In this document: positions 3,401-60,100 of the stretch, piece by piece | Layout of the letters: the number at the start of each line of letters is the position of its first letter | How positions within the stretch are numbered: position 1 is the stretch's first letter | Assembly: GCF_037042905.1 (NCBI RefSeq) | Contig: NC_087245.1 | Location: 27,962,001 to 28,026,000, forward strand | Reading direction: 5' to 3' | Origin: Lytechinus pictus | Lineage: Eukaryota | DNA: 64,000 nt | The notes under the pieces: model-generated | What the model was told of the DNA's origin: nothing | Database searches by the model: none | What the model saw: only the letters and a program-made list of their open reading frames with translations | Made by a program: the position numbers and the translations under genes

Positions 3401-6392
3401 TTCTGTCTACCTGGATAATAATGATGAATTTCTTTTATTTTGTTTACAATAGCCATCATGATGATTATTACTATCTGGCATACCTCTTTGACCAGTCGTA
3501 TAATGGCGATGCAAGGTCATACTACAGAAGCAGCTATCACAGTGTGGTCTTGACCTTTGACCTTGGAGAAATCTTCTTTCTGAATGTAATCAGAGTTCAT
3601 GTCCAATGTAATGCTCTTACAAAGTTCAGGGTAAGTGACTGTACTAGAAAACATGTAGCCCTAGAGTAGGGTAGACAGTATTGAAATAAGGTATACCAAA
3701 CATTTTCAGTCTTATTTAGAGAAGATCTTTTGAATTAATAGAAAAAGAAAATCAGAGGTTATGACAAAATCTTAAATTCATTGTTGAATTGATTTTCCAA
3801 AGGAGGGAAATGATTTGAAAACACATCCATGCAATTTTACAAAATTCGGGTATTGCTTATTCAGTATGAAGAGATACAGTAAACCTCTCATGTTGGAAGC
3901 AAATTTAACAATGTTACTTCATCCCTTTGCCATTGAATAATTCCCAGAACTTTTTCATGATTGAATGATGAATGTTTTCATTGTCTCCTATTGGTTTCAG
4001 GTGGAGTCTTCTTTAGGAGGTACCATCCTGCCAATAACTACAGACTATGTCCTTCCTCCAAACCCATGCCGTGGGTCTGGCCCTTATCTGGAACTGTCCG
4101 TTAAACGAAGGGCCGACACTATCAAATTCCATTTGACTTCCACTCAATCAAGTTCTGTGACTTACAGTGATGCTGCATTGTCAGAAATCGAGATCTTTAT
4201 TGATGAATCTCATGTGCACTCCAGGTAAAGAATTATACATGCATTGTCTTTAAAAAGATTGATTGTATATATTTATATACAGTATACATGATTTAGTTGT
4301 GTTATAATGATGAATATGACTTCTTGGAAGATTATCATACAGCTTGGGAAATAATTTTCAGACTATACCATAAGGGATTTTAGACACTTTGTCAAAAGTC
4401 AGAGCTTCTTCTTTTCCACAGGAAACCCACAAGCCACAAGTTATTCATTACCAGTCCTCAAATATTTGAAAGATGAGAGTCAGTCCTACTAGACCTGGGG
4501 CCCGTTTCATAGAGGACTTGCAACTATTGAAACTTTGCCATTATGGCAACTACCAGGAAATCTTGATTATGATTGGCTGCTGAGCCCTGTTACCATAGTA
4601 GTTGCCATTATGGCAAAGTTACAACAGTTGCAAGTCCTTTATGAAACGGGGCCCCAGAATATCTGAATATCATTTTATCCGTAATATAATCCTTCACCTA
4701 TCGGTAGAAGTACATGCAGTTCTTGATACCTACATGTACCCAAGTGTCATACTGTATGTACACCCATTCCTTACCGTAGGTATGAACACAGAGGACTAGA
4801 CAGTGCAAGGACCTGGATTGAACCTGCTGGAACCAGTTCTCACCAGTTTGATGAGGTTTATATACTTGGAGGTGCACACCTGGCTTTCATGCCACTAGAT
4901 TACAACCTTACTGAGCCGGTTTCAGTTCAAGTTGGCCAGCTGTATGGGGATACAACTGGTAAGTACATGTATTACCTCTTGTAAGAAACTCAGATGACGA
5001 TACAGTGTATCCTGGAGTTGCCAAAGATTGGTTCTTACTATCATGTAGAGATGTTGAATCAGTCCTGGCAGTCTACAGAAGAGACATGTAAAATAAGTCC
5101 TGAAAGCTCACACACACCAGCAGGAAAAGTCTTACATATTTTCACGACAGCTTTCTTTCACAATGATTAAACTTACACCGAAGTCACACAATTGTGTAGA
5201 TACTAATGTATATACCTGACCTGCTGAATACTGATTCTCCTTCCATACTGGAACCAGATATCTTCTTTGAATAAAATATAGGAATAACAGAACTCAGAAG
5301 TGAACATATTTGATGAAGAGACTGAAGTAATCTTAATTATTTGTTTTGTAAAGGGGAAACGAATGTTGTTCACCTTTTCAGGTGAAGAGTTCAATTATTG
5401 TACTGTAAATAATTGCAAGTTTGCAGTTCAATTCTTGCTTTTCAGCTAACCACTGGTGTTGAAAAATGTATATTAGGCTGGTTTAATTAGAGAGTCCATT
5501 TTCATCAAATCCTGCCTGATCTGAGAGTATCAGAGATGTCTTTAATAAACAGTTTCAAAACATTTCCTGGCATTTTTTATTCAGTAATATATTTAACTAC
5601 ATGTACATTATTGTGATTTTATCTTGCCTTATCTTATTTGACTACATTTTGTTTTATTCTAATATAGACAACTTTACTTAGACATCCTTGAACACCATTC
5701 CTATATTTGCCAATGCTCAATTCAAATTCCTTCATTTTATCTTTATACTGGCATATGTTTTCTCATGATGCCTTTCTTGTTACCTTATTTTCTTTCTCAG
5801 TATTTGAATTCAAATTTTAAAATGAATTGAATCCTCTAAATCCATGTATGATCAATCTGATCTGTATTGAATGAAATCCATGACTTCTGTTCTCTGTTTC
5901 CAGGCTATATTCACCTTGGTTTCAAGCAGTCCATGTCTATCAACATCACTCATCCTGATATCTCCTTCAATACAAGGGTCTATGAGGAAGGAAGACTGGT
6001 GATGCCTTCTAGGGCATTCTTCAAAGGAGTTGAGCTTATTTCTTCAGGAAATGTTAGTCCACTCTCTTAAAANNNNNNNNNNNNNNNNNNNNNNNNNNNN
6101 NNNNNNNNNNNNNNNNNNNNNNNNNNNNNNNNNNNNNNNNNNNNNNNNNNNNNNNNNNNNNNNNNNNNNNNNNNNNNNNNNNNNNNNNNNNNNNNNNNNN
6201 NNNNNNNNNNNNNNNNNNNNNNNNNNNNNNNNNNNNNNNNNNNNNNNNNNNNNNNNNNNNNNNNNNNNNNNNNNNNNNNNNNNNNNNNNNNNNNNNNNNN
6301 NNNNNNNNNNNNNNNNNNNNNNNNTACTGCTACTACTACCAATACTGCTACCAATACTACTACCACTACTACTACCACTACTACTACCACTA

Positions 6393-6437
<45 letters not shown>

Positions 6438-9400
6438 ATTCTACTACTACTGCTACTACTACTGCTACTACTACTGCTACTACTACCNNNNNNNNNNNNN
6501 NNNNNNNNNNNNNNNNNNNNNNNNNNNNNNNNNNNNNNNNNNNNNNNNNNNNNNNNNNNNNNNNNNNNNNNNNNNNNNNNNNNNNNNNNNNNNNNNNNNN
6601 NNNNNNNNNNNNNNNNNNNNNNNNNCTAGTGCTCCAACAACACCAGCATCAACTTCTAATACTACAAACAAAAGCCTACTACTTGTACTACTACTACTAC
6701 TGCTATATAAGCTTGATGATGTACATGTAGCACAGAGTACACTGACAAAATGAAGTCTCTATGTCCTTTAGAGAGAGTGAAATAAAAATTATGAAGCAAC
6801 GAACCTCTCTTTTCATACAATGAACATGTAATCACCATGTAACTGATTTATCAATTAATCTCTTTTACTTGTAGTGGGAGTACAAACAAAATGGAAAAGA
6901 AGGGTTTTGCAAGACATGCTTCAAGTATGTATTTGCTCTCAATCTTTGCTTTAACACTTTCTCATTTATGTTTTTCCTTTTGTCATTCTGTGCTATTTAC
7001 TTCATACATATCTCTTTATTTTTTCCAGGTTGCAGGGATTGATGATCTGTTTGTCTTTGATGGTGGTTTTGTTCACTTGGATGCCAATGGTAGCCTTGGT
7101 TATGACAGCGATCCTAGAGAACACACTTTGTCTAGTCTACACATACAAGATGGCGGGACCTTCTGGCTGGAGAGCATAGATGTTTGTGATCGTGTGAGCC
7201 TGTCTGCATACAACATCACTGTAAGTACTGCAAGATTGTAAACAGTGGTGAACAAGCATGTCAGTTAGGAGTCAGTAGTCCAAAGTGTAAATCCACTTTT
7301 GTTCCTTGTTGAACGGGGTTGGCTGGATTCACCCCATGTCACGATAATCTCCCTTACCTGTCACTCCATTTTGCATGATTTGGTGCATATTCTCTAATCC
7401 TTGTACCAACCCTCCGACTCTCCACCTTCACGTGCTTCTGCCATGCTCTATAGGGGTTGGAAAAGGAAAGAGGAGCTCATTAAAAGATGGGTTCTATGGT
7501 CGATGGCTTGTGTTTTTTATATGATATGTCGCCTCACTGGCAAAATTCAATGTTTTCTAATTGTCCACCACTGATTTGAAACACAAAAATAACACTAGAG
7601 GAGAAAATATTCATTAGAAATCTACTTTAGATGTGAATGTATTTTGTTCAAATTGATCATTTGTGAAAAACATAGTTGAGATATCGGAGTTCTTTGTGAT
7701 GGTGTTGCTAAAACTTCAATTTTGTTTTGCTCTTCATGGTGAGTCACCATCTTAACAAAAATTTTGTTCTTTTTCAATATGTTTCTTCATCATATATATT
7801 TATATACAGAGAGTAAACATAATTGTTGTATTTTATTATACTAATGGGACGATATCTCATGGATTCTTCATGTATGTGCATTATTTTTGAAAAAGGGGAT
7901 TCGAAAGCATTTGTTAGAATAAGGGCTTGAATTTCAGTACCTGTGTGGATTTGTCAGTATGAATGTGTTGGTGGAACGCTCTAAACTGCCAAGTGATCGA
8001 TACATGTTGTAACTCTTAATCAAGATTGATAACTTATGCAAAAAATACATTGAGAAAATGTCTTCTGTTGTCTCACAATCAAGGATTATGTGTATGTTGG
8101 AAGTGTCTTCATGGAATTAAATATCTTTTTAAAGACTCTAGCTAATGTGATGTTCTTTTTAAGCCAAATTAAACTTTGTAGAGGTTATGATTTTATTTGA
8201 TTACATTACATACAGGTGTATGGAGGAGGTCACTTTCAGTCTAACGCTGGTCTCAATATCTCGGCATCTCATCTCTTTGCTATTTACTCTGGTGGTGAAC
8301 TCAATCTTGATCGTTCTGGTTTCCAGACTTGGTCTTCCATCCAGCTTGGATCTACACTCGTCAGGGGACCGGGCCAGGGCTATGGTAAGACCATACGCAT
8401 GAAAAATCCAGTTTAGAAATAGATGTTCATAATAAGTCTAATCTGCTCTTTGATTTGATGCCTCAATCACAGAAAATGGTCAAGAAATAAAAACAATTCT
8501 GTTTATTTGGAATAATCCTTGGATGTCAATGAATTCATAAAATGAGGTTTTACAGGTTAGCTTTCAGACTTACTTCAACACTCCAGTTTTGTTGACGATC
8601 AGCCATGCATAATGTCTTTTGTTAACTGTGCAATAGGTTAGGTGGGAAGCCAATGAACACATTTGTTGAATGAAATTATGGAAATACAAGTGTTGTTTCG
8701 AGGGAACATAACTTTTTTTATTTCTTGACCATTTCCTGTGATTGAAGTATCCAATCAAAGAGCAGATATCAAAATTTTTAGGCATGTGATTTTCTTTTTG
8801 GAATTCAGATACCTCCTGCCTAATGAATTTTTGGTATCCCTTTTTCAAATTGTTTTTACTCACTCATGCATGAATGAGAAATATTCTCTATTGTACCAGA
8901 TGAAAGAGGGACTCTAAGCGTTATTATGATAGGTCATTAGTCTGTTGTATTTGTGATCAAGTTATGATTAATCATTGGTAAATCTTGGTTTCATTTTTTT
9001 GTGGGACGCACTGTATATACCCTCACTTGTCGTATATTGTCCCATATACACAATTTATGTAAAGAAGTGTCTGTTTATTGCTGTAGCAGGTGTTGTTTGT
9101 TGATAAATGGAAATAGAAATTCATAATAATTGTTAGGGGAAAAAAACATTAAAAAATAATTGATCATATTACAAATGTGACATTTACATAATAGCAATAG
9201 ATAATAGACAAATATTTAGAATGCAGGGGCCAGCTATCATAAATAAAATAATAGCTTGACTTTATGGTACATGATTTGAGAAAATGGGCGATATCCACCT
9301 CTCTTTTTATTCCAATAGTACAGTCTCATTTAAATGATCCAGAACAAAATGCCACAACAATAAAAAAAAATCATTTACCCAAAATCAATTTTTTGTGTAT

Positions 9401-51400: not shown

Positions 51401-53821
51401 CCTTTGGGACACTCCACATTGGACTATACCAGTCGTTTCAACTGAATGAAGTTGACATTATTCTGCCATTCAACCTGAAGCTCTACCATGATGCTACTCT
51501 CACAATCCTCCCACCTGGTGTCACCTTTCAGTCAAGCCAGAACTTCATCAATGGGAGGGTAATTGGCGGTGGAGATGTAACGGTCATTGATGCAGAGTTG
51601 TCTTACGGTCAGCATGCAAGGTCTGGAAATACTCCAGAAGCTACGATTGTACTGCATTCATTACAGATCAGATATGGTGGAATCGTATCATTCCTAGATG
51701 GTATTGAAGAGTACACTATTAGGGCTGGAACTGTTAATCTGTCTCCTGGAGGTATTCTGAGAGGAAGAGCTTTGCTAATGGAAGATGTGGACACACTAAC
51801 TATTGAGGAAACCGCCATTCTGACAGTAGATCATGCTAATCCTTTCTCTCAGAATACTGGTAAGCAGTCAAATCATGTCTCATTAGCTTATAATGCTGAA
51901 ATACATGTAGAAGTTTGCTTTGTTCCTTTATAGTTTTTCATATTGACAGAATATGAGGCTCCACTTTTCTTACAAGGAATTTGTTCACAAACAGAAATTA
52001 TTGATGATAGTATTAGCTGGATTTATAAAGTTTTTTTTTTAAATGCCATGATTATTACCCCATATTAGCTGTGCTGCCCATTTAGGCGCTCAAGAATTCT
52101 AGGAATTTCTTCCTACCGGGTACCTATTCACCTCACCCGTGTTGAGTACAGCACAATGTGGGTAAATTTCTTGCTGAAGAAAAACACGCCATCGCTGGGA
52201 TCGAACTCACGTCCCTCAGATTGAAAGACGAGAGTTATAACCACTAGATGCATTGACTGCTTACTGTCGCATTTGCACCCAACGATAGCATCATGGTACT
52301 CTTGTTCTGTTACTGTGTTATCTTTAAATAAGTTGGTTTCATTGGGTGTAGATTTTTTCAGACAGTTTTTATATGAAGTTATTTTTATACATCAAGAGAA
52401 ATTTAATCTTTTGTATTTTGGCTTGGCTTAAGTATGATATACGTTCTCTTTTGAATGATTTGAAGAATTTAGGTCTGGCTCTGGTGGAAGCCTTGGTGGG
52501 GAAGGAGGATATGGACACGTCACCAGCACAAGAACATACCCCATCACTGATATCAGCAGTCCAAACCTGTTTGGTGAACCTGGACAATGTCGATGGAACC
52601 CCTGTCTAAATGGAGAGTCCCCAGCTGGAGGTGGGAAGTTACTTATCAAGGCACATACTATCATCAATAGGGGCAACATTAGTGCAAGGTATTCAGAATT
52701 ATATTTCACCTACCTAGAAGCTTTTGGAGGATCATTCAAAAGTCTTTCATGTGATAAAACGGCTTAGCCCATCTTTTATCTGTGAAAAGAAGATTGTTGC
52801 AAAGTAGATCTTAATGTTAAGATTGCGCAAGAGACCGGTCATTCATATATTCTATATTTATCAAAGACTGGTGATGAGTAGTCATGATTAAAGTTTAATG
52901 ATCACTTACAGTTTACTATATTCTGTTTGATAAAAAAACTTAGTACACTTCTCTATGTTGCTATGCAAGTATTTATTTGTTACCATGGATGGTAACATTC
53001 ATATCATGTTAAAGTAAAACTTACAAACAGAATATCTGTAGTTAAATTGATGTGATATGTGTAATAAATTATACATTATTTACAAAAAATACATATCATT
53101 ATCATTGTTGGTTCACTTTGTTTTTCCACAGTGGAGAAGATACTCCCAATAGTATGCAGGCTGGAGGTGGGTCTGGAGGAAGTATCTGGTTAGAGTGCAC
53201 AAATATTGACTCTACTGGTAAGTTAATTATCACACCTCTTCGCCTCTATGGATCATATAAATTGCTTATAAAGAATATGTACTTTATAAGAAGAAGAATG
53301 CATTGAAATTTTAAGTGATGTAATGCATACTTAAGTTTTCATTTTACATGTATGTACATGTATTTGTCATTTAAATTGATACTTTTGTTAATTTCTAAAA
53401 AGATGATGCAACCATTCAAATATTTTACTCAATACATAGACAAGAGTGAATAAAAAGAACTTTTCTCAATTTGGTGCATTAAATTGGATATAGCTAATCA
53501 TATAAAAAGAAATAATGATAACATATTTTGGCATGGTTTGGATAACAATGTTTCCATCCTTCAGTGTGTTGACACATAACTGAGTGAAGTGGGACCAAGA
53601 CGGAATATTTTTTTTATACTGGTCTTTTCATAGGTACCATATCTGCAGCTGGTGGTGTTGGTAGGGAAGGAGGAGGTGGGAGTGGTGGCCTGATCAAGAT
53701 TTCACATGAAGTTGGGTCTATCTCGAAAACACCAAGGTCCTGTGGAGGGCTGGGGCACCAGACAGGAGGTCCAGGACTAGTTATGCTTGAACAGAAACTG
53801 ATTGGAACATATCACAAAATG
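269..53821 (+). CDS. Giant multi-exon gene (partial at both ends): 52 exons, 3,864 aa in window; Gly-rich/beta-solenoid tandem-repeat protein, probably extracellular
   Basis: All 51 introns are GT..AG and exon phases match throughout (sum 11,592 nt, divisible by 3, no internal stop seen). Recurring motifs GA(S/G)HGG, YGxxxxPxxFGS, DGxIxAxG, GGSGGSI, GGGGRIA, GAAGTVY, LxVDN, FDE..GxAH, GD.TG..H.G..Q. Many N-x-S/T sequons. Confidence 0.9.
1020..1193 (+). CDS. Exon 2 (GASHAGLGG...YGNLYNPRDFGSGG; Gly block of unit 1)
   Basis: cag|GT...ATC G|gtaag. Confidence 0.9.
1709..1861 (+). CDS. Exon 3 (GGTLQIQ...DGTIMA...GGSGGSILI)
   Basis: tag|GT...ATT G|gtgag. Confidence 0.9.
2343..2727 (+). CDS. Exon 4 (GAGGRIAIY...GAAGTVY...LKVDN)
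   Basis: cag|GT...TAT CC|gtaag; within ORF 2327-2731. Confidence 0.9.
3453..3630 (+). CDS. Exon 5 (inserted galactose-binding-like domain, LTFDLG)
   Basis: tag|C CAT...TTC AGG|gtaag. Confidence 0.85.
4001..4224 (+). CDS. Exon 6 (...AALSEIEIF...)
   Basis: cag|GTG...TCC AG|gtaaa. Confidence 0.85.
4495..4657. mobile_element. Palindromic MITE (GGG..CCC ends, CWG flanks; PIF/Harbinger-like)
   Basis: ctggggcccgtttcatagaggacttgcaact ... agttgcaagtcctttatgaaacggggccccag; degenerate relatives near 35732-35885 and 45925-46082. Confidence 0.75.
4780..4958 (+). CDS. Exon 7 (RTWI...FDEVYILGGAHLAF...GDTT)
   Basis: tag|G TAT...ACT G|gtaag. Confidence 0.9.
5904..6052 (+). CDS. Exon 8 (YIHLGFKQ...)
   Basis: cag|GC...GGA AAT|gttag. 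Confidence 0.85.
6073..6324. other. Assembly gap (N run)
   Basis: Run of N. Confidence 1.
6325..6705. repeat. (CTA/CCA)n microsatellite, interrupted by N gap 6488-6625
   Basis: tactactac repeats between and after the gaps. Confidence 0.95.
7029..7220 (+). CDS. Exon 9
   Basis: cag|GTT...ATC ACT|gtaag. Confidence 0.85.
8216..8384 (+). CDS. Exon 10
   Basis: cag|GTG...TAT G|gtaag. Confidence 0.85.
8440..9014. mobile_element. Remnant of a TA-flanked Tc1/mariner-type non-autonomous element
   Basis: Right end ttttttgtgggacgcactg|ta; internal inverted pair ~8465 and ~8715; left end not found. Confidence 0.4.
9491..9631 (+). CDS. Exon 11 (GGGHGGSGG...YGSIYDP; unit 2)
   Basis: tag|GT...TAT G|gtaag. 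Confidence 0.9.
10190..10462 (-). mobile_element. tRNA-derived SINE (degenerate)
   Basis: Antisense B-box-like gggtttcaaaccc and head aaccactagaccacaac; similar copies ~21700-22008 and ~52050-52248. Confidence 0.7.
10511..10666 (+). CDS. Exon 12 (GGRGGGALK...DGIISANG)
   Basis: cag|GT...GCA G|gtatg. Confidence 0.9.
11190..11363 (+). CDS. Exon 13 (GGSGGSVW...GAGGRVAI)
   Basis: tag|GA...GGA G|gtaag. Confidence 0.9.
11992..12733. mobile_element. piggyBac-like non-autonomous element, truncated at one end; inverted relative of 62826-63575
   Basis: Ends ...ttttaggg|ttaa; body is reverse-complement similar to 62826-63575. Confidence 0.75.
12806..13056 (+). CDS. Exon 14 (GGAGTVYL...TWL...FDE)
   Basis: tag|GC...GAC GAG|gtgag. 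Confidence 0.9.
13089..13575. mobile_element. TIR MITE (TGTGAC ends), copy 1
   Basis: tgtgacctgccacccccaaaaccaacaataagtcg ... cgacttattggtggttttggggtggtagtacaca; homologous to 36103-36552. Confidence 0.75.
13969..14147 (+). CDS. Exon 15 (IHLHGNAHVA...GDRSAVIHIG)
   Basis: tag|ATT...TAT AG|gtaaa. Confidence 0.9.
14599..14800 (+). CDS. Exon 16
   Basis: cag|A TAT...GTG AAG|gtaaa. Confidence 0.85.
15577..15703 (+). CDS. Exon 17
   Basis: tag|ATG...TCA G|gtatg. Confidence 0.85.
16144..16371 (+). CDS. Exon 18 (GSGAGHGGRGG; unit 3)
   Basis: cag|GA...GCA G|gtgag. Confidence 0.9.
16688..16852 (+). CDS. Exon 19 (EGLLHANG...GGGSGGSLLL)
   Basis: cag|GT...AGC G|gtaag. Confidence 0.9.
16878..17178. mobile_element. 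MITE with TTAA target duplication and AGG..CCT ends (Kolobok-like)
   Basis: ttaa|aggtcaagtccacccc ... ggggtggacttgtcct|ttaa. Confidence 0.8.
17265..19350. mobile_element. ~2.1 kb non-autonomous DNA transposon, TA-flanked (Tc1/mariner-like), no ORF
   Basis: TIR cacaacaaaaaaagtaagtccccc / gggggacttacttttttgttgtg, with ta on both sides. Confidence 0.8.
18838..19003. mobile_element. Poly-G/poly-C MITE nested in the 2.1-kb element, 5-bp direct repeat CAATA
   Basis: caata|caggggccggggaag ... cttccgcggcccgtg|caata. Confidence 0.75.
19610..20087 (+). CDS. Exon 20 (GSGGRGAIY...GAAGTFY...LVADN; start of second inserted domain)
   Basis: cag|CC...AGT GG|gtaag. Confidence 0.9.
20613..20757 (+). CDS. 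Exon 21
   Basis: cag|T TGG...ATT AGG|gtagg. Confidence 0.8.
21309..21473 (+). CDS. Exon 22 (...ASLRNVEIL...)
   Basis: cag|TTT...GAC AAG|gtaat. Confidence 0.8.
21700..22008 (-). mobile_element. tRNA-derived SINE (degenerate) with upstream (TAA)n tail
   Basis: ggtacccatttacctcacctggg core, gggattcaaact B-box-like, (aat)n 21662-21735. Confidence 0.65.
22068..22299 (+). CDS. Exon 23 (GDHTGQI..GQ)
   Basis: cag|ATC...TAT G|gtaaa. Confidence 0.85.
22762..23815. mobile_element. TTAA-flanked long-TIR element (Kolobok-like) carrying a nested MITE
   Basis: ttaa.aggg.ggttcaccct ... aggatgaacttttcct|ttaa; ~100-bp imperfect inverted arms. Confidence 0.6.
22971..23583. mobile_element. Nested MITE (CCGTA ends) with repeated tactagtattcaacc motifs
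   Basis: accgtatgggtactagtattcaacccg ... cgggttgaatactagtgcccttacggt; motif present five times across both orientations. Confidence 0.75.
23902..24092 (+). CDS. Exon 24
   Basis: Weak aaag|GT acceptor required by phase; GCC CAG|gttag. Confidence 0.7.
25019..25189. mobile_element. Palindromic MITE with CTG target duplication (PIF/Harbinger-like)
   Basis: ctg|gtgggtgtttcataaagctgttcgtaagttaagag ... ctcttaacttacgaacagctttatgaaacggcccc|ctg. Confidence 0.8.
25278..25383 (+). CDS. Exon 25
   Basis: cag|ATG...GAT G|gtagg. Confidence 0.75.
25900..26139 (+). CDS. Exon 26 (GAGHGSNGG...YGSFMTPDTFGS; unit 4)
   Basis: tag|GA...TCA G|gtaaa. Confidence 0.9.
26156..26518 (-). mobile_element. Full-length tRNA-derived SINE, same family as 60978-61342
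   Basis: Reverse complement of the 60978 copy (head, core and AT-rich tail). Confidence 0.9.
26658..30667. mobile_element. 4.0-kb fold-back non-autonomous DNA transposon (TAG..CTA ends, 3-bp TAA duplication; Academ-like)
   Basis: taa|tagtagaccggccaaaa ... ttttggccggtctacta|taa; >1-kb inverted arms built from a ~623-bp tandem unit (gcatcccagctaaaagtcttgc at 26726 and 27349). Confidence 0.8.
28096..28330. mobile_element. hAT-type MITE with 8-bp target duplication, nested in the fold-back element
   Basis: catagaaa|cagtagcgtaccta ... taggtacgctagtg|catagaaa; truncated relative begins at 29151. Confidence 0.85.
31130..31315 (+). CDS. Exon 27 (GGGSGGSIWI...GAGGRVAVY)
   Basis: cag|GT...TCA G|gtaaa. 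Confidence 0.9.
31717..32346 (+). CDS. Exon 28 (GGPGTVYL...DELHVYGGAEVA...GDRTG)
   Basis: tag|GT...GGA G|gtgag; overlaps ORF 31740-32402. Confidence 0.9.
32856..33001 (+). CDS. Exon 29
   Basis: cag|GG...TTA CAG|gttag. Confidence 0.85.
33977..34088 (+). CDS. Exon 30
   Basis: tag|GTT...GCA G|gtatc. Confidence 0.85.
34670..35290 (-). mobile_element. L2/CR1-group LINE 3' fragment with (CATA)n tail
   Basis: ORF 35049-35315 encodes YGDKAF...PKLWNKL...FKSLLKTHLF, a typical ORF2 C-terminus. Confidence 0.75.
35386..35681 (+). CDS. Exon 31 (GASHGGEGG...GGASGGSI; unit 5)
   Basis: tag|AA (NAGNAG, alternative start 35389)...TCG|gtaag. Confidence 0.9.
36103..36552. mobile_element. TIR MITE (TGTGAC ends), copy 2
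   Basis: tgtgacctgctaccccaaaaaccaacaa ... ttgttggtttgggggtggctggtcaca. Confidence 0.75.
36594..36806 (+). CDS. Exon 32 (GGGGRMALY...GASGTVY)
   Basis: cag|GCA...TCA CAG|gtaca. Confidence 0.9.
37857..38120 (+). CDS. Exon 33
   Basis: cag|GTC...TAC CAG|gtatg. Confidence 0.85.
38430..38739 (+). CDS. Exon 34
   Basis: cag|GAT...ACA G|gttgg. Confidence 0.85.
39565..39797 (+). CDS. Exon 35 (GASHGGRGG; unit 6)
   Basis: cag|CA...GGT CAG|gtgag. Confidence 0.9.
41084..41234 (+). CDS. Exon 36 (GGGIIKL...DGEILASGG...GASGGSI)
   Basis: tag|ACG...ACA G|gtaaa. Confidence 0.9.
41510..41765 (+). mobile_element. L2/CR1-group LINE 3' fragment
   Basis: Translates to GYGDRAFSSIAPRIWNSLPSSLR...LKAHLF; tail gcgcaatataaat. 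Confidence 0.75.
41953..42164 (+). CDS. Exon 37 (furin-like Cys-rich insert)
   Basis: cag|GG...ATC AAG|gtagg; CVPHCSSCDPERRCLQC...CVDDC...HC. Confidence 0.85.
42800..43283 (+). CDS. Exon 38 (GSGGRIAI...LIVDN...GDGTGLVHI)
   Basis: cag|GAA...AAA G|gtaat. Confidence 0.9.
43834..43943 (+). CDS. Exon 39
   Basis: tag|CT...ACC AAG|gtatg. Confidence 0.85.
44519..44695 (+). CDS. Exon 40
   Basis: cag|GGA...CTA AAG|gtagg. Confidence 0.85.
45285..45408 (+). CDS. Exon 41
   Basis: cag|GGA...ACA G|gtata. Confidence 0.85.
45640..45909 (+). CDS. Exon 42 (GGSLGGTGG...PLDFGS...GGGSGGSI; unit 7)
   Basis: cag|GA...AAA G|gtatt. Confidence 0.9.
46612..47081 (+). CDS. Exon 43 (GGGGRIGI...GGAGTV...FDELVLRGRAHLA)
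   Basis: tag|TT...CAT CAG|gtgag. Confidence 0.9.
47432..47613 (+). CDS. Exon 44
   Basis: aag|GAT...ATG AG|gtgaa. Confidence 0.85.
48331..48556 (+). CDS. Exon 45
   Basis: cag|A CCA...CAC ATT|gtaag. Confidence 0.85.
49286..49487 (+). CDS. Exon 46 (GAGHGGFGG; unit 8)
   Basis: cag|TCA...GAT G|gtgag (possible alternative donor after 49505). Confidence 0.85.
50294..50419 (+). CDS. Exon 47 (GGASGGSILL)
   Basis: tag|GC...AGA G|gtaag. Confidence 0.9.
50687..50895 (+). CDS. Exon 48 (GAGGRIAVY...GAAGTVY...LLVDN)
   Basis: cag|GC...CCT GAT|gtaag. Confidence 0.9.
51217..51859 (+). CDS. Exon 49 (KTWF...FDELTLLGNAHLAF...)
   Basis: cag|ACT...ACT G|gtaag; within ORF 51190-51933. Confidence 0.9.
52050..52248 (-). 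mobile_element. tRNA-derived SINE fragment
   Basis: Similar to 10190-10462; gggatcgaactc B-box-like. Confidence 0.65.
52466..52688 (+). CDS. Exon 50 (GSGGSLGGEGG; unit 9)
   Basis: Phase requires the gaag|AA acceptor rather than ttag ending at 52472; GCA AG|gtatt. Confidence 0.75.
53132..53217 (+). CDS. Exon 51 (GGGSGGSIWL)
   Basis: cag|T GGA...ACT G|gtaag. Confidence 0.9.
53634..53821 (+). CDS. Exon 52, last exon found (GGGSGGLIKI...GGPGLV); gene open downstream
   Basis: tag|GT...AAA ATG|gtaag. Confidence 0.85.
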
Positions 53822-54255
53822 GTAAGTGCACATTTTCTGGATCTTGATTTGGATTGTTACAACTCAACACTCGTGGGGAGTTGGGTAGGTGTGTGCAAAG
53901 ATTTCCTATCTTTGCAGGTATTGAGTTCCATTCTATCAGTATTTTGAGGATGATTGAGTGTTTGAAAAAAATATTTCCTGGAGCCAATTACAATATACAC
54001 TACTCAAAAAAAGTTAAGGACCACTTTTTAAAACGTACATAAAGATTTTATACAAGGTGTTTTATTTCTGGAAATACCTCAGTACAACTGTCCTAAATGT
54101 CCTTAAACACGCTGTAATCAATTTCACGCATGGGTGGTTTCAGTTGTTGCATAATGTCTCTCGCATCACTGCACATCCTGAAAAGTGGGCCCCGAGGGGT
54201 ATCAGCTACCGACATGAAGTGGTAAAAACGAATGTCTGAGTGTCTTTCAGGCAGT

Positions 54256-54787
54256 TCAGTAACGAGTGTGACCACCTCCTGCAGCAATAACGGCTTCACA
54301 GCGCTGTCTCATGGAGCTGATGAGGCGATTGATGTCTCTGACGTCCAGTGCATCCCATGCAGCCTCCAGAGCCACACCCAGCTGCTGCAGTCCAAGTGGA
54401 TGGGCTTCGAGCTGCTCGAGACTCCTCCCCATCATGTCCCAGACGTGCTCTATCGGGTTTAAGTCCGGGGACCTCGCTGGCCACTCCATACGCTCAATCC
54501 CCTGGCCCTCAAGGAACTCGGTCACCACCCTAGCTCGGTGGGCACGGGCATTGTCATCCATGAAAATGATGTTTTGTCCCACATTTTCTGCAAATGGCAC
54601 CACTATAGGTTCAAGGACCTCATCCCTGTACCTCACTCCTGTCATTGCTCCCCCTGGGACCACGTAGAGACGAGTACGGTTGGCGTAGGTGATGCCTCCC
54701 CACACCATGACGCTGCCTCCCCCATAACGGTCATGTTCTGCAATACAGGGGTCTGCAAATCTCTCTCCTGGTCGCCTCCAGACTCTC
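54256..54787 (-). pseudogene. Inverted duplicate of the transposase 3' half (intact frame, retains W)
   Basis: ORF 54256-54708 (-) reads ...PIEHVWDMMG...GGHTRY. Confidence 0.9.
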
Positions 54788-54981
54788 TACAATCAACAAA
54801 TTGCTGACAACAGCAATACCAAGATACAGCTGTCCAGGATGCCATCAAACACAATGAAATCAATTTCACACATGCAGTTCTTTCATGTCTCTTGCATCAT
54901 TGCAATGTGCCCGTACAAAAGTGGCTTCCAAAGCATTTTCTGTCTTTAGTCTGTACAATCAACAACTTGCCTACAACAGCA

Positions 54982-56010
54982 ATGCCAAGACACCACCTAA
55001 GTGAAACAGATGTAGCCAGAGCCCTAGGGATGCTGGAAGCTGGCCTCAGTCAGCGAAGAGTAGCCAGAATGATGGGCGTGTCACACAGTGTCATTAGCAG
55101 AGCAAATCAAAGACACCGAGAGACAGGGCTATACTCCGAGAGACCCCGCAGTGGCCGACCAGTTTCGACAACCCCTAGAGATGATCGCTACTTGACGAAT
55201 CTCAGCCTCCGCAACCGCTTTCACAGTGCACGCCGCCTCAACAATGACTTCGCTGCAGCAACTGGAGTGATTGTTTCCACTCAAACAATCCGTAACCGAC
55301 TTCACAGAGCCAATATGCATGCCAGACGGCCAGCTCAGTGTGTCCCACTCACCCCTGCTCACAGAAGAATTCGTCTCAACTGGGCCCGGGAGCATGTCAG
55401 ATGGACCAGACAGCAATGGCGTAGAGTTCTGTTCACAGATGAGAGCAGATTTTCCCTTGACCACAATGATGGACGTTCGAGAGTCTGGAGGCGACCAGGA
55501 GAGAGATTTGCAGACCCCTGTATTGCAGAACATGACCGTTATGGGGGAGGCAGCGTCATGGTGTGGGGAGGCATCACCTACGCCAACCGTACTCGTCTCT
55601 ACGTGGTCCCAGGGGGAGCAATGACAGGAGTGAGGTACAGGGATGAGGTCCTTGAACCTATAGTGGTGCCATTTGCAGAAAATGTGGGACAAAACATCAT
55701 TTTCATGGATGACAATGCCCGTGCCCACCGAGCTAGGGTGGTGACCGAGTTCCTTGAGGGCCAGGGGATTGAGCGTATGGAGTGGCCAGCGAGGTCCCCG
55801 GACTTAAACCCGATAGAGCACGTCTGAGACATGATGGGGAGGAGTCTCAAGCAGCTCGAAGCCCATCCACTTGGACTGCAGCAGCTGGGTGTGGCTCTGG
55901 AGGCTGCATGGGATGCACTGGACGTCAGAGACATCAATCGCCTCATCAGCTCCATGAGACAGCGCTGTGAAGCCGTTATTGCTGCAGGAGGTGGTCACAC
56001 TCGTTACTGA
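54982..56010 (+). pseudogene. Tc1 DD34E transposase, 342 codons, single TGG>TGA nonsense at 55825-55827
   Basis: HTH region, GRP motif, FTDESRF, MDDNARAH, then 34 residues to E in SPDLNPIEH. Confidence 0.92.
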
Positions 56011-57127
56011 ACTGCCTGAAAGACACTCAGACATTCGTTTTTACCACTTCATGTCGGTAGCTGATACCCCTCGGGGCCCACTTTTCAGGATGTGCAGTGA
56101 TGCGAGAGACATTGTGCAACAACTGAAACCACCCATGCGTGAAATTGATTACAGCGTGTTTAAGGACATTTAGGACGGTTGTACTGAGGTATTTCCAGAA
56201 ATAAAACACCTTGTATAAAATCTTTATGTACGTTTTAAAAAGTGGTCCTTAACTTTTTTTGAGTAGTGTATGATGTGTTGTAACTCCTAGTTAATGGCTG
56301 ACAGGGTTTAGCATGTTGTGGACTTCATCTCTCTGTAAATGTAATCCTACCAAGTTCTGCTGTAGTAATTATTAACAAATCTAGCAGCGTTTCTTTCCAT
56401 TGTCAAAACTTCTGATTTACTATCAATAACTGGGATATACTCATTTGATTTGCTAGTTCATTACGATTAACTTGCACACCGAATAAAAGTACACAATTTT
56501 TCCTGCGCGCACTATCCCAAGATCATCACGCAAATAGGCGTCCATTTCCTCTTTTACTTTCGCCTGCCGCCGTGATCAGACGTTAGCTAAGTACACTCCC
56601 ACTTTGCTTTTTTAAAGTGTCCGTTGTTGATATATTTATCTATATATTTAATGCCTATTTCAATCCTTTGCCTTTCGGCTTTAGATTGATTTCATTTACA
56701 ACATGTATATCTCTCTGCGCGGAGCCTTCGTGTTATTTATTCACGTTTTCTTCAAATAAACTTATGAGTTCCGAACCGTCAGTTTCGTTTTCTCACAGAC
56801 GGGTTGCCTCCGCTTCCCTTCCCCGTATAGCTCCGCGCTCTCCTGCGTGCCGCAGGCACTGATGCCACGCTCCCTTTTCTTCTTTATAATCCTTCAGAGC
56901 TTCCAAGTCTTCCGGATCCTGCGGGAGAATACTGGATTACGATCCAATCTCCCGTTCTCCCGACCCCATGCCAAAATCTCCCGGATAATCAGGATTTTTA
57001 GCTGTTAAATTGTAAAATTCATACAAACGACTGTTTTACGAGTCTAGCATGTTCAACTCCCTAACACCCACGTGGAACCTCCTTATCACATTTTCATTTT
57101 ACCCAGTAACTTTTACCAGTTTTTTTA

Positions 57128-60100
57128 TAATCGTACGTTGATTTCCAATGTAGGTGGTGTGGCTGTATACATATCGAAAAAGTTCAATTACAAAAAAAGG
57201 GATGATCTGATTTCACCAAATTTAGAATGTATTTGGTTTGAATTGCATTATCCAAACAAGTCTCCAATTCTGGTTGGGGAGTTTTATAGACCTCCGAATT
57301 CTCATGTTGATTTCTTTGAAGAATTAGACAGAAACTTGGATGCTGCTCTCTTGGAAGATATGAGCAGTATTATTTTGGGTGATTTCAACTGTGATTGTAT
57401 GCCACAACAAAATGATGTGAATGGGGAAAAAATAAAGTTTTATACAAATATGTACGGGCTGAGTCAGCTTATTGATACTGCTACAAGAGTTACAAATACC
57501 TCTGCCACTTTAATTGATTTGATATTTGTATCAGACAAAGAACTATACAGTGAATGGGGAATATTTGAAACTAGTATAAGTGATCATTATTTGGTGTATA
57601 CAATTCGCGATTTCAGTGCTAAGATGTATAAAGATTCAGAATTTGCAGAATTTCGTTCATTTAAAAATCTTGATGAGGAAACATTTTATAGCGAATTGAG
57701 AAATATTCCTTGGCAGGTCGTAAAAGATATAGATGATGTTGATGTTGCTTGGGATGTATGGTTGACTTTTTTCAATGATGTAATCAACAGGCACATTCCC
57801 TTTTGTAAAAAGCGGATAAGAAAAAAAGCTTGTCCTTGGATATCTGACGAGGTCGTCAAGCTAATGAAGGAACGTGATAAGGTTCTAAAAACAGCTAAAG
57901 TTAACAAAAATAATGATATTTGGGACACATACAAATTTCTGAAAAATAAAGTTATTCATCTCATGAGAAAAAGTAAAAAAGAATATAATGCTAACCAGAT
58001 TTCACAAAATCAAAACAATAGTAAGAAAATGTGGAGATGTTTGAGAGAACTTGTGCCCAAGTCATTACCTATTTCTCCCAACACCATAAACGTAGATGGA
58101 ACAGATGTGTCGGGCAATGCAAATATTGCTGAAGCATTTAATGAATTTTTCAATTCAAATGCTACTAATATTACTAAGGACCTGCAAAGGGATACGTCTC
58201 AACAGAGAGTTCAAGTAGAAGATGATACAAATGTTGGTTCAATTCACTCTCAATTTGAGCTAGAGTTGATTACTAGAGATTTTATTTTGAAACAGATTGA
58301 TAATCTGAGTATAGATAAATCAACTGGGGAAGATCATGTCAGCTGCAAACTTTTAAAGATGACAAAAAATATTATCGCAGAGTCCCTTTGTGATATTATT
58401 AACAAATCCCTTACTACTGGAGTTGTTCCTCGTGAATGGAAAAAGGCTCGGGTAGTACCAATATTTAAATCTGGTGATATGTCTTCGTTGAATAATTACC
58501 GCCCAATTTCTATATTACCAATCGTTAGTAAAATTTTAGAAAGGGCTGTTCACCAACAGCTAAGTGAATTCTTGGACGTGAATGATTTATTACACCCAAA
58601 TCAATCTGGTTTTCGGCCTATGCATTCAACAACTACTGCCCTTGCAAAACTTGTAAATCAGTGGTCGTTAAACATTGATAACAATTTAATTTCTGGAGTT
58701 GCGTTCATAGATCTTCGGAAGGCCTTTGATACCGTGGACCATGAGCTGCTTTTAAAGAAATTAACTTGCATTGGTTGTAGTAAGAGGACTATCACTTGGT
58801 TCAAATCATATTTATTTGATCGACAACAAGTGACACAATTCAAAGGAGCCAAATCGCACCCTTCAATCGTCAAATTAGGCGTGCCACAAGGGTCAATTCT
58901 AGGTCCCCTTTTATTTTCAATATATGTTAATAGTTTACCTGAATGTATTCATGAAGGTATTATAGATATGTACGCTGACGACACGACACTTACCGTCAGT
59001 GCGAATGATGCGACAGTTTTGGAAGAAAAATTAACTGTTGCATTAAACAAGGTCATGGCATGGATTAAAGATAATCAGCTCGTCCTCAACACTGAAAAAA
59101 CTTGTGTCATGATAATAGGTTCTCGTGCTAATCTCAGGAAAATAGATTCTTTCACGATTTCGTTAAACGGTGATTTGATAAATAGGGTTCAATTCACCAA
59201 ATGCTTAGGAGTTTTGATAGATGAAGAACTGAAATGGTCAAAACAAATTGAAAATGTATGTAAACTTACTCAGAAAAGCATTGGCATAATAAAGAGAGCG
59301 AAAAGTTCTTTGCCTGTGCAGTCCTTAAAGTTGCTTTATAACAGTTTAGTGTTGCCAAGATTTGATTACTGTTCTGCTGTATGGTCGAATAGATTTCAAT
59401 CCCATACAATTAAGCTGCAAAAAATTCAGAAGAGGGCTGCAAGAATTATATTGAACAAGACATACGACACACCGTCGGCTGATTTGTTCACAAGTCTTAA
59501 ATGGATGACACTAGACAAATGATTTGAGCTCAGTCGCGTTTTGATGATATTTAAATGTGTTCATAATTTAGCACCTTCTTACCTTCAGGTAAACTTAACC
59601 AATCCAAATGATGTACATGAACATCATACCAGACAGAGAGACAGTGGATATTTACGCATGCCCAAGTTTCGCACTGATTGTTATAAGTGTAGTCCAATCG
59701 TATCTTCAATATTTGAATGGAATAAGCTTGATAATTCAATTAGAACAGCTCCTTCTGTCATTTCATTTAAGAGAATGTTTAAAAGAACTTGTAATTTATA
59801 AATAACTTGCGGAACATCCACTGTTGTGCTTATTTTGTGTTAGCATGACCTTGATGATTTGGTGTATATTATCAGTATTTTCAAGATGTCCTTCTTAATT
59901 AATTTGATTTATTGATATTTTATTATACGTCAAACGAGTGCCCGTCTGCGTTTTGTTTGCTGCTAAGTTTGTTAATGTTTCGTTTTACATTCAAATCCTA
60001 ATGTGAATCTTAATGCTGTAACATTCTGTACATACGTTATGCATTTTGTAAATATGTTTATTGTTATTCAGGGCCCCATGGAAGACCACTACTTATTGGT

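Follow-up and report, generated by a model that had tools for sequence, protein, structure and literature searches.

A Tc1-like element with two right ends in an intron of Lytechinus pictus: probably one copy of a mobile, rearranged derivative of a young family

Introduction

The window analyzed here, a stretch of 64,000 nucleotides of Lytechinus pictus DNA, contains a Tc1-like transposable element that lies in an intron and terminates on both sides in the same end. The original prediction for this locus held that the left end of the element had been replaced by an inverted copy of its right 790 bp, and that read-through from the host gene would provide transposase double-stranded RNA acting against the whole family, as Mu killer does in maize. 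We asked whether the rearrangement took place at this locus, making it a unique allele, or whether the element reached the intron in its present form as one copy of a mobile class.

Structure of the element

A repeat search of positions 53000-57300 returned a single long inverted pair, 53990-54787 and 55479-56276, with arms that were 99% complementary and separated by 691 nt. Base-by-base comparison placed the element proper at 53998-56268 (2271 bp), with a TA at each side; the outer 8 nt of each arm in the repeat search are merely a partly palindromic, AT-rich target outside the element. When the window copy was compared with a normal copy of the family (L007), both of its ends were found to be the right end. 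The two 790-bp arms differ at exactly 4 positions (54089/56177, 54152/56114, 54417/55849, and 54439/55827), and all 4 differences are transitions. The structural part of the original prediction, namely a left end replaced by the right 790 bp in inverted form, about 4 transitional mismatches, a spacer at 54788-55478, and intact termini with TA flanks, was thus confirmed. The features of the locus are listed in Table 1.

Table 1. Coordinates of features at the two-right-end element, in positions of the window
Feature	Position	Strand	Remarks
Host exon	53633-53821	+	Spliced contig of run X1; open frame with glycine-rich repeat
Left TA target-site duplication	53996-53997	.	Base-by-base comparison
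Short arm, inverted copy of the family right end	53998-54787	-	Matches reference copy 1909-1117 at 99.7%; DDE_3
Open transposase frame in short arm	54259-54786	-	Residues 167-342, 176 aa
Rearrangement junction (54787/54788)	54784-54791	.	4 nt common to both sides; at 11 other loci too
Spacer (loop), 691 bp	54788-55478	+	166-bp repeat, 5' leader, transposase residues 1-166 including D153
Transposase frame of the window copy, 281 aa	54982-55827	+	TGA stop at 55825-55827
Long-part arm, native right end	55479-56268	+	Mirror of 53998-54787
Right TA target-site duplication	56269-56270	.	Base-by-base comparison

Each arm comprises the right terminal repeat and the 3' untranslated part together with the sequence for transposase residues 167-342, so that D244 and E279 of the DD34E triad are within the arms and D153 is outside them. 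The spacer of the window copy has one full 166-bp unit and the partial unit that is present in all copies; typical members of its junction class (described below) have one unit more. The TGA that ends the long transposase frame is a private G>A change located after E279 of the catalytic triad, and a further 59 codons remain open beyond it at 55831-56010. In all, the window copy has 7 private substitutions, the stop codon among them; its private bases are at 54152, 54415, 54818, 55827, 55849, 55851, and 56177. It is predicted to be a non-autonomous copy with intact ends.

The restriction of the arm mismatches to transitions was also considered as a sign of editing or of directed mutation. This was rejected, as 16 of the 23 single-arm changes in the junction class are transitions, an ordinary proportion, and RNA editing leaves DNA unchanged.

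Identity and age of the family

Pfam matches of the transposase were HTH_Tnp_Tc3_2 (PF01498, 5.6e-19), DDE_3 (PF13358, 2.6e-16), and PF13936, and its relatives in a protein search were named Tcb1/Tcb2 or Tc1-like transposase. The catalytic triad of a natural full copy is D153, D244, and E279 with a 34-residue gap. With paired-type helix-turn-helix DNA-binding domains and DDE_3, DD34E spacing, TA duplication, and terminal inverted repeats, the family has the characters of a Tc1-like DD34E element. The closest transposases outside the family in a large protein search were 89% and 87% identical, and the next were at most 59% identical.

A search of the same genome (812 Mb in 368 contigs) found many copies of the long part of the element at 98-100% identity. 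Family loci were fetched and compared by BLAST with L007 as the reference. The normal member is about 1.9 kb long and encodes a 342-aa transposase, with 1 to 3 tandem 166-bp units after the left terminal repeat. Each of its two terminal repeats, left and right, spans about 200 bp; they are 83% alike, with the outermost 34 nt or so being identical. Many other loci were head-to-head fusions in which a near-complete copy without a left end is joined to an inverted, truncated right part; these are referred to here as two-right-end (R-R) elements. The search for normal and further rearranged copies that the original prediction had proposed thus yielded both, including 11 more loci with the junction of the window copy.

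Over the right 1.2 kb, normal copies differed from one another by 0.29% on average, as did R-R copies, and comparisons of normal with R-R copies gave the same mean. The family as a whole is thus very young, and it is apparently thriving and recently active.

Near-identical transposases were also present in other public assemblies (P0001 and P0002), and the family was found at near identity in runs with five different organism codes and in marine and echinoderm metagenomes. Run X2, which is genome-sized, contained a 1.5-kb family contig at about 98.8% identity and none of the unique intron and exon sequence at 53600-53990. The element may be present in more than one species. Metagenome scans with the junction 29-mer and with the right-end 30-mer gave no match.

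One junction at 12 loci

A 120-nt probe over the joint between arm and spacer matched 11 further loci over its full length at 98-99%. A twelfth match, at 87%, was rejected as an instance of the same junction because it proved to be a different one. A 29-mer across the joint had 12 genomic matches, 11 of them exact and 1 with a single mismatch, and the reversed control had none. The 11 loci other than the window are on other chromosomes, and all 12 members of the class share the same architecture, lie in unrelated flanks, and have TA on both sides. A typical member measures 2440 bp. Two members, the window copy among them, are short of one 166-bp unit, another has an additional unit, and one carries a further internal deletion. 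A full 342-aa frame is present in 9 of the 12. Because the same junction is found at 12 loci with unrelated flanks and TA duplications, the window element arrived already rearranged, as a mobile unit.

Pairwise differences among the 12 copies were 0.14-0.66%. Of the 26 variable columns in the arms, 23 were confined to a single arm of a single copy, and no variant was common to several copies. Such star-like variation has the pattern of a burst from one source with identical arms. The 4 arm mismatches of the window copy are likewise all private, and its arms were, therefore, identical on arrival.

The 3 remaining variable columns were private to one copy, yet found at mirror positions of both arms (54415 and 55851 in the window). 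This observation points to occasional conversion from arm to arm.

These data bear directly on the origin implied by the original prediction, in which an ordinary element inserted into the intron and had its left end replaced in place afterward. Intact TA flanks would be expected after such a replacement as well. However, the identical junction at 11 other loci, each with unrelated flanks and TA duplications, and the identity of the arms on arrival make a local, one-off event practically untenable, and the junction predates the insertion. The other 11 loci could instead be segmental duplications, an explanation that is argued against by their unrelated flanks.

An assembly artefact, either a palindromic chimera or a collapsed repeat, also has to be weighed. 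Some long-read libraries are known to generate artefactual palindromes, and among four runs no independent contig spans the junction. However, random chimeras would not repeat one joint 12 times with separate flanks, TA duplications, and private substitutions, and the other junction classes of the family (at least 14 in the sample described below) also respect the exact ends of the element. We consider a misassembly highly improbable, since the same junction occurs at 11 other loci with different flanks and with private substitutions of their own.

We assign a probability of about 0.85 to our main reading, in which the window element belongs to a mobile class of R-R derivatives of a young Tc1-like DD34E family. 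The suggestion that the element could still be mobilized is well supported: the rearranged form is present at 12 loci with TA duplications, and many copies of the family have full transposase frames. The youth of the insertion suggests that it may be polymorphic among individuals.

Census of two-right-end elements

The genome was surveyed with two exact 30-mers located just inside the shared terminal sequence, one specific for the right end and one for the left end; mutated ends are missed by this survey. The right-specific 30-mer was found at 401 sites in the whole genome and the left-specific 30-mer at 131. If a normal element has one right and one left end, and an R-R element has two right ends and no left end, the excess of right ends corresponds to approximately 135 R-R elements compared to at most about 131 left-bearing elements. 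These counts imply that R-R forms would make up about half of the family. The original prediction had named a rearranged structure native to all family members as a finding that would speak against it; this was borne out for about half of them, the left-bearing elements forming the other part.

Among the first 100 of the 401 right sites (C1 to part of C3), there were 38 convergent pairs spaced 1.3-3.0 kb apart versus 24 single sites. In contrast, no convergent pair, as expected for a form with two left ends, was seen among the first 100 of the 131 left sites. On C1 and C2 there were 20 convergent right-end pairs, including the window copy, and every one was a true R-R element in unrelated flanks. 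TA was present on both sides in 18 of the 20, and each of the other 2 has one end that mismatches the search motif.

The 20 sampled elements fell into at least 14 junction classes. One class, which holds two complete transposase genes in head-to-head orientation, had five members, another had two, the class of the window copy was represented by two, and eleven elements were singletons. Loops measured 60-1160 nt and the inverted coding sequence 0.2-1.3 kb. At least one full 342-aa frame was present in 13 of the 20 elements, and two full frames in 3. The joints had 0-4 nt of microhomology or a short filler; none was at a TA, and none had internal end sequence. The second right end was in place of the left end in every case. 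In one element, L050, the left end was retained without only its last 2 nt and was followed by 6 filler nucleotides.

An R-R structure could, in principle, result from two independent insertions in opposite orientation, one in or beside the other, with a later deletion. The family is abundant enough to supply such pairs, and L050, in which an almost complete left end is found beside a truncated inverted copy, has the appearance expected. However, joints that lie away from TA and contain no internal end sequence argue against this explanation, as does the lack of any fixed difference between the arms in the three classes with several copies, which is a weak test in a family that is just 0.29% diverged. 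We consider double insertion quite improbable. The census indicates that R-R forms arise repeatedly through non-homologous or microhomology joints, and that at least three of the classes have moved as units. Natural, recurrent, and mobile two-right-end foldback derivatives of a Tc1-like family are a variation on a known type of element; no report of natural two-right-end Tc1 forms was found in the literature searched, which offered precedents only.

Host intron and the question of silencing

A 1988-nt contig from run X1 aligned to the window solely at the host exon, as a spliced transcript would. The alignment ends at 53821, with a GT at 53822, which supports an exon donor at 53821/53822 and leaves 176 nt of intron before the element, the same distance as in the original prediction. 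The window is full of exon-like frames on the plus strand, indicative of a very large gene with glycine-rich repeats. Five of its exons had no Pfam match, and the leads for the host gene in the protein atlas were weak (all below 0.9). These results support placing the element in an intron, in sense orientation, of a host gene that is expressed.

The RNA of 53998-56268 had a predicted fold of -1874 kcal/mol, and in this structure 788 of the 790 positions of an arm pair with the mirror position in the other. In the host pre-mRNA, the antisense short arm would be followed by the loop and then by the sense arm, and folding into a 790-bp stem is plausible according to this model. If read-through produced about 0.8 kb of transposase double-stranded RNA in this way, small RNAs derived from it might repress the family, and the intronic copy would be a trans-silencing locus similar to Mu killer. 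Expression of the host exon from the same strand and the predicted stability of the stem both favor this possibility. However, none of the contigs of four runs (X1, X2, X15, and X7) spans 54787/54788 or the joints with the flanks, and at 54784 they show just the normal continuation of the family. The coverage of family contigs in RNA-like runs was not accepted as a sign of transcription, as genomic DNA at approximately 0.5x per copy over hundreds of copies is sufficient to account for it. The promoter region of the family is inside the loop, and self-transcription would leave out the short arm.

The census also weighs against the proposed role, because some 135 copies capable of forming a hairpin coexist with a family that is 0.29% diverged and in which many transposase frames are full. 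With so many hairpin copies in a young family rich in open frames, any silencing would have to be collective, late or recent, or weak, and there is no reason to assign a special role to the window locus. We regard a trans-silencing function of this particular copy as rather unlikely, and its status as "the" silencing locus of the family was not upheld.

Proposed origin and spread

For the class of the window copy, we propose that the left 245 bp were replaced once, in an ancestor, by the inverted right 790 bp, with 4 nt of microhomology at the joint. The resulting unit, typically 2440 bp and usually with an intact transposase, would then have transposed in one piece to no fewer than 12 loci, this intron among them, duplicating the TA at each. 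After landing, the window copy would have gained its 7 private substitutions, including the stop.

In general, R-R elements could originate when the DNA breaks in or close to the left end, a stretch of variable length is lost, and synthesis proceeds by fold-back or template switching on the same or a sister copy. End-joining at the left-end break is an alternative route. The left end of L050 is what a transposase cut 2 nt inside the end, followed by end-joining, would leave. The joints can be explained by several models, fold-back among them. Identity of the arms compared to the rest of the family was considered as a test of self-templated origin and discarded as uninformative, the whole family being just 0.29% diverged. 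Fold-back priming at breaks is documented in yeast, where it gives short inverted insertions (PMC11724301), and microhomology-mediated remodeling has been described for a Tc1/mariner element in Aedes, where there are MITEs derived from Tc1/mariner (PMC3814204). Abortive gap repair is another route to internally rearranged derivatives. The joints reported here resemble both systems in having 0-4 nt of microhomology or filler and in representing many independent events. Those in Aedes and yeast, in contrast, are mostly deletions or very short inverted insertions, whereas the inverted duplications in this family are on the kilobase scale and always replace the left end.

Once formed, an R-R element might be excised cleanly as a palindrome and inserted at a new TA by a transposase that accepts two right ends. 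The success of these forms could mean that two right ends are a sufficient, perhaps even a better, substrate for the transposase. Indirect signs that R-R forms may out-transpose normal copies are the site counts (401 right against 131 left), the classes with several members, and the lack of left-left pairs. Frequent formation would give the same counts, and the 11 singletons among the 20 sampled elements are a point against it. Absence of left-left forms fits a biased origin and a biased ability to move equally well. A wider reading, in which the family is being taken over by R-R forms that are repeatedly born, likely by fold-back, move as units, and now equal or outnumber their parent, is possible and is offered tentatively, at odds clearly below even.

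Relation to known elements

The general assumption is that a cut-and-paste transposon depends on the two different ends that it has by nature. Experiments with Mos1 and Sleeping Beauty indicate that the natural pair is suboptimal, and what was engineered there seems to have happened here in a wild genome. With two right ends, Mos1 was cleaved 15 times better than in its natural form and transposed 26 times better; with two left ends it was 50 times worse (PMC4505599). Preference for one end has similarly been reported for Mboumar-9 and Sleeping Beauty (PMC4505599). The elements found here are like the Mos1 right-right constructs in being bounded by two copies of the right end. The Mos1 constructs, however, had repeats of about 30 bp and were engineered donors assayed in vitro (PMC4505599), whereas the present forms are natural and recurrent, carry 0.2-1.3 kb of inverted coding sequence, account for about half of a family, and are known from sequence alone. 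If the preference for the right end is true, this family would be the first case in nature, and on the scale of a genome, to match the engineered hyperactive "RR" configuration of Mos1. The family also makes it possible to test, in a tractable marine invertebrate, whether asymmetry between the ends limits transposition in vivo.

Mu killer, which belongs to the Mutator superfamily of maize, occupies one locus and does not move, and both its siRNAs and the heritable silencing have been demonstrated (PMC3440606). The analogy drawn in the original prediction held in part. Both are partial inverted duplications of a transposase gene with two copies of one terminal repeat, and in both a hairpin RNA would be expected from read-through of a flanking gene. 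In contrast to a single fixed locus, the window junction is shared by 12 loci and approximately 135 R-R elements exist. The present form also differs from Mu killer in being an animal Tc1-like element that is mobile and often has an intact transposase, and in that our knowledge of it comes from genomic sequence. The window locus is one decayed member of a recurrent mobile class and not a unique "killer" allele. If R-R forms are taking over the family, each product carries a kilobase-sized hairpin of its own transposase gene, and the spreading family would build its own double-stranded RNA trigger. With this family it becomes testable, in an animal, whether derivatives that carry a hairpin initiate small-RNA silencing against a young DNA transposon.

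Tc7 of C. elegans, reportedly described by Rezsohazy et al. in 1997, is said to have long inverted arms around a unique loop, Tc1 ends, and insertion at TA. Its arms reportedly contain no transposase sequence, and it is said to be strictly non-autonomous. The R-R elements are similar to Tc7 and to foldback-like Tc1 hitch-hikers in their long inverted arms around a unique loop, in having the ends of an autonomous element, and in insertion at TA. In contrast, the arms here consist of transposase coding sequence, and most copies of the window class have the full gene. The full frame was present in 9 of 12 class members and in 13 of 20 sampled R-R elements, and the frame of the window copy is 281 aa.

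For genome annotation, R-R elements resemble nested or misassembled copies, and they carry duplicated transposase genes.

Structure of the R-R elements

The commonest class of elements with two right ends fused head to head (R-R elements) carries two complete 342-aa transposase genes, also head to head. The short arm in this class stops 4 nt before the ATG, and the second gene therefore has no upstream leader. The left end was examined in L050, a sampled R-R element, where it is near complete, with only the last 2 nt missing (L050:2050-2100), and is followed by 6 filler nt and then by an inverted truncated copy. Such a joint is what would be expected if the transposase had cut 2 nt inward of the terminus and end-joining had then sealed the break, a course of events that would fit TACATGTA excision scars.

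Copies of the family carry 1-3 units of 166 bp in tandem. The unit number differs between members of the window's class, the 12 loci, its own included, that share the arm/spacer junction of the window copy, and this variation accounts for the element lengths of 2271, 2440, and 2606 bp in that class. In sequence the unit is 73-75% alike to the inner portion of the terminal repeat; the units could be additional transposase-binding sites or a promoter. At 3 of the 26 variable arm columns in the window's class, substitutions private to a single copy were found at mirror positions in both arms, which points to occasional gene conversion between the arms within an element.

Coordinates and loci of the features described (L, fetched family loci; L007, natural normal copy)
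Feature	Location	Strand	Description
Very large host gene	window 875-53821	+	dozens of exon-like frames
N runs	window 6073-6324; 6488-6625		252 nt; 138 nt
Mirror-position private substitutions	window 54415 and 55851; further cases in L031, L036
166-bp tandem units	window 54784-54993; L007:1294-1706		between left terminal repeat and transposase start
Non-LTR retrotransposon	window 57048-59519	+	824-aa open frame; PF03372/PF14529 endonuclease, PF00078 reverse transcriptase
Commonest R-R class	L043, L044, L055; also L016, L017, L026		2905 bp

Distribution and genomic surroundings

Twenty public sequencing runs (X1-X20) were considered for window 53600-56600, and contigs of four of them (X1, X2, X7 and X15) were aligned to it. 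Runs under five distinct organism codes, as well as metagenomes labelled marine or echinoderm, contained the transposon at near identity. In one run of genome size it was present at approximately 98.8%, but the unique flank of the window copy was not. The transposon family may be common to several species, or it may have been transferred recently.

The non-LTR retrotransposon lies in the same intron as the window copy, on the strand of the host gene. A Pfam search with five host-gene exons gave no match, and a protein atlas search for the host gene gave a weak G8-domain lead only. The exon-like frames of the host gene contain glycine-rich repeats (GGSGGS... and GGxGGRI.VYY).
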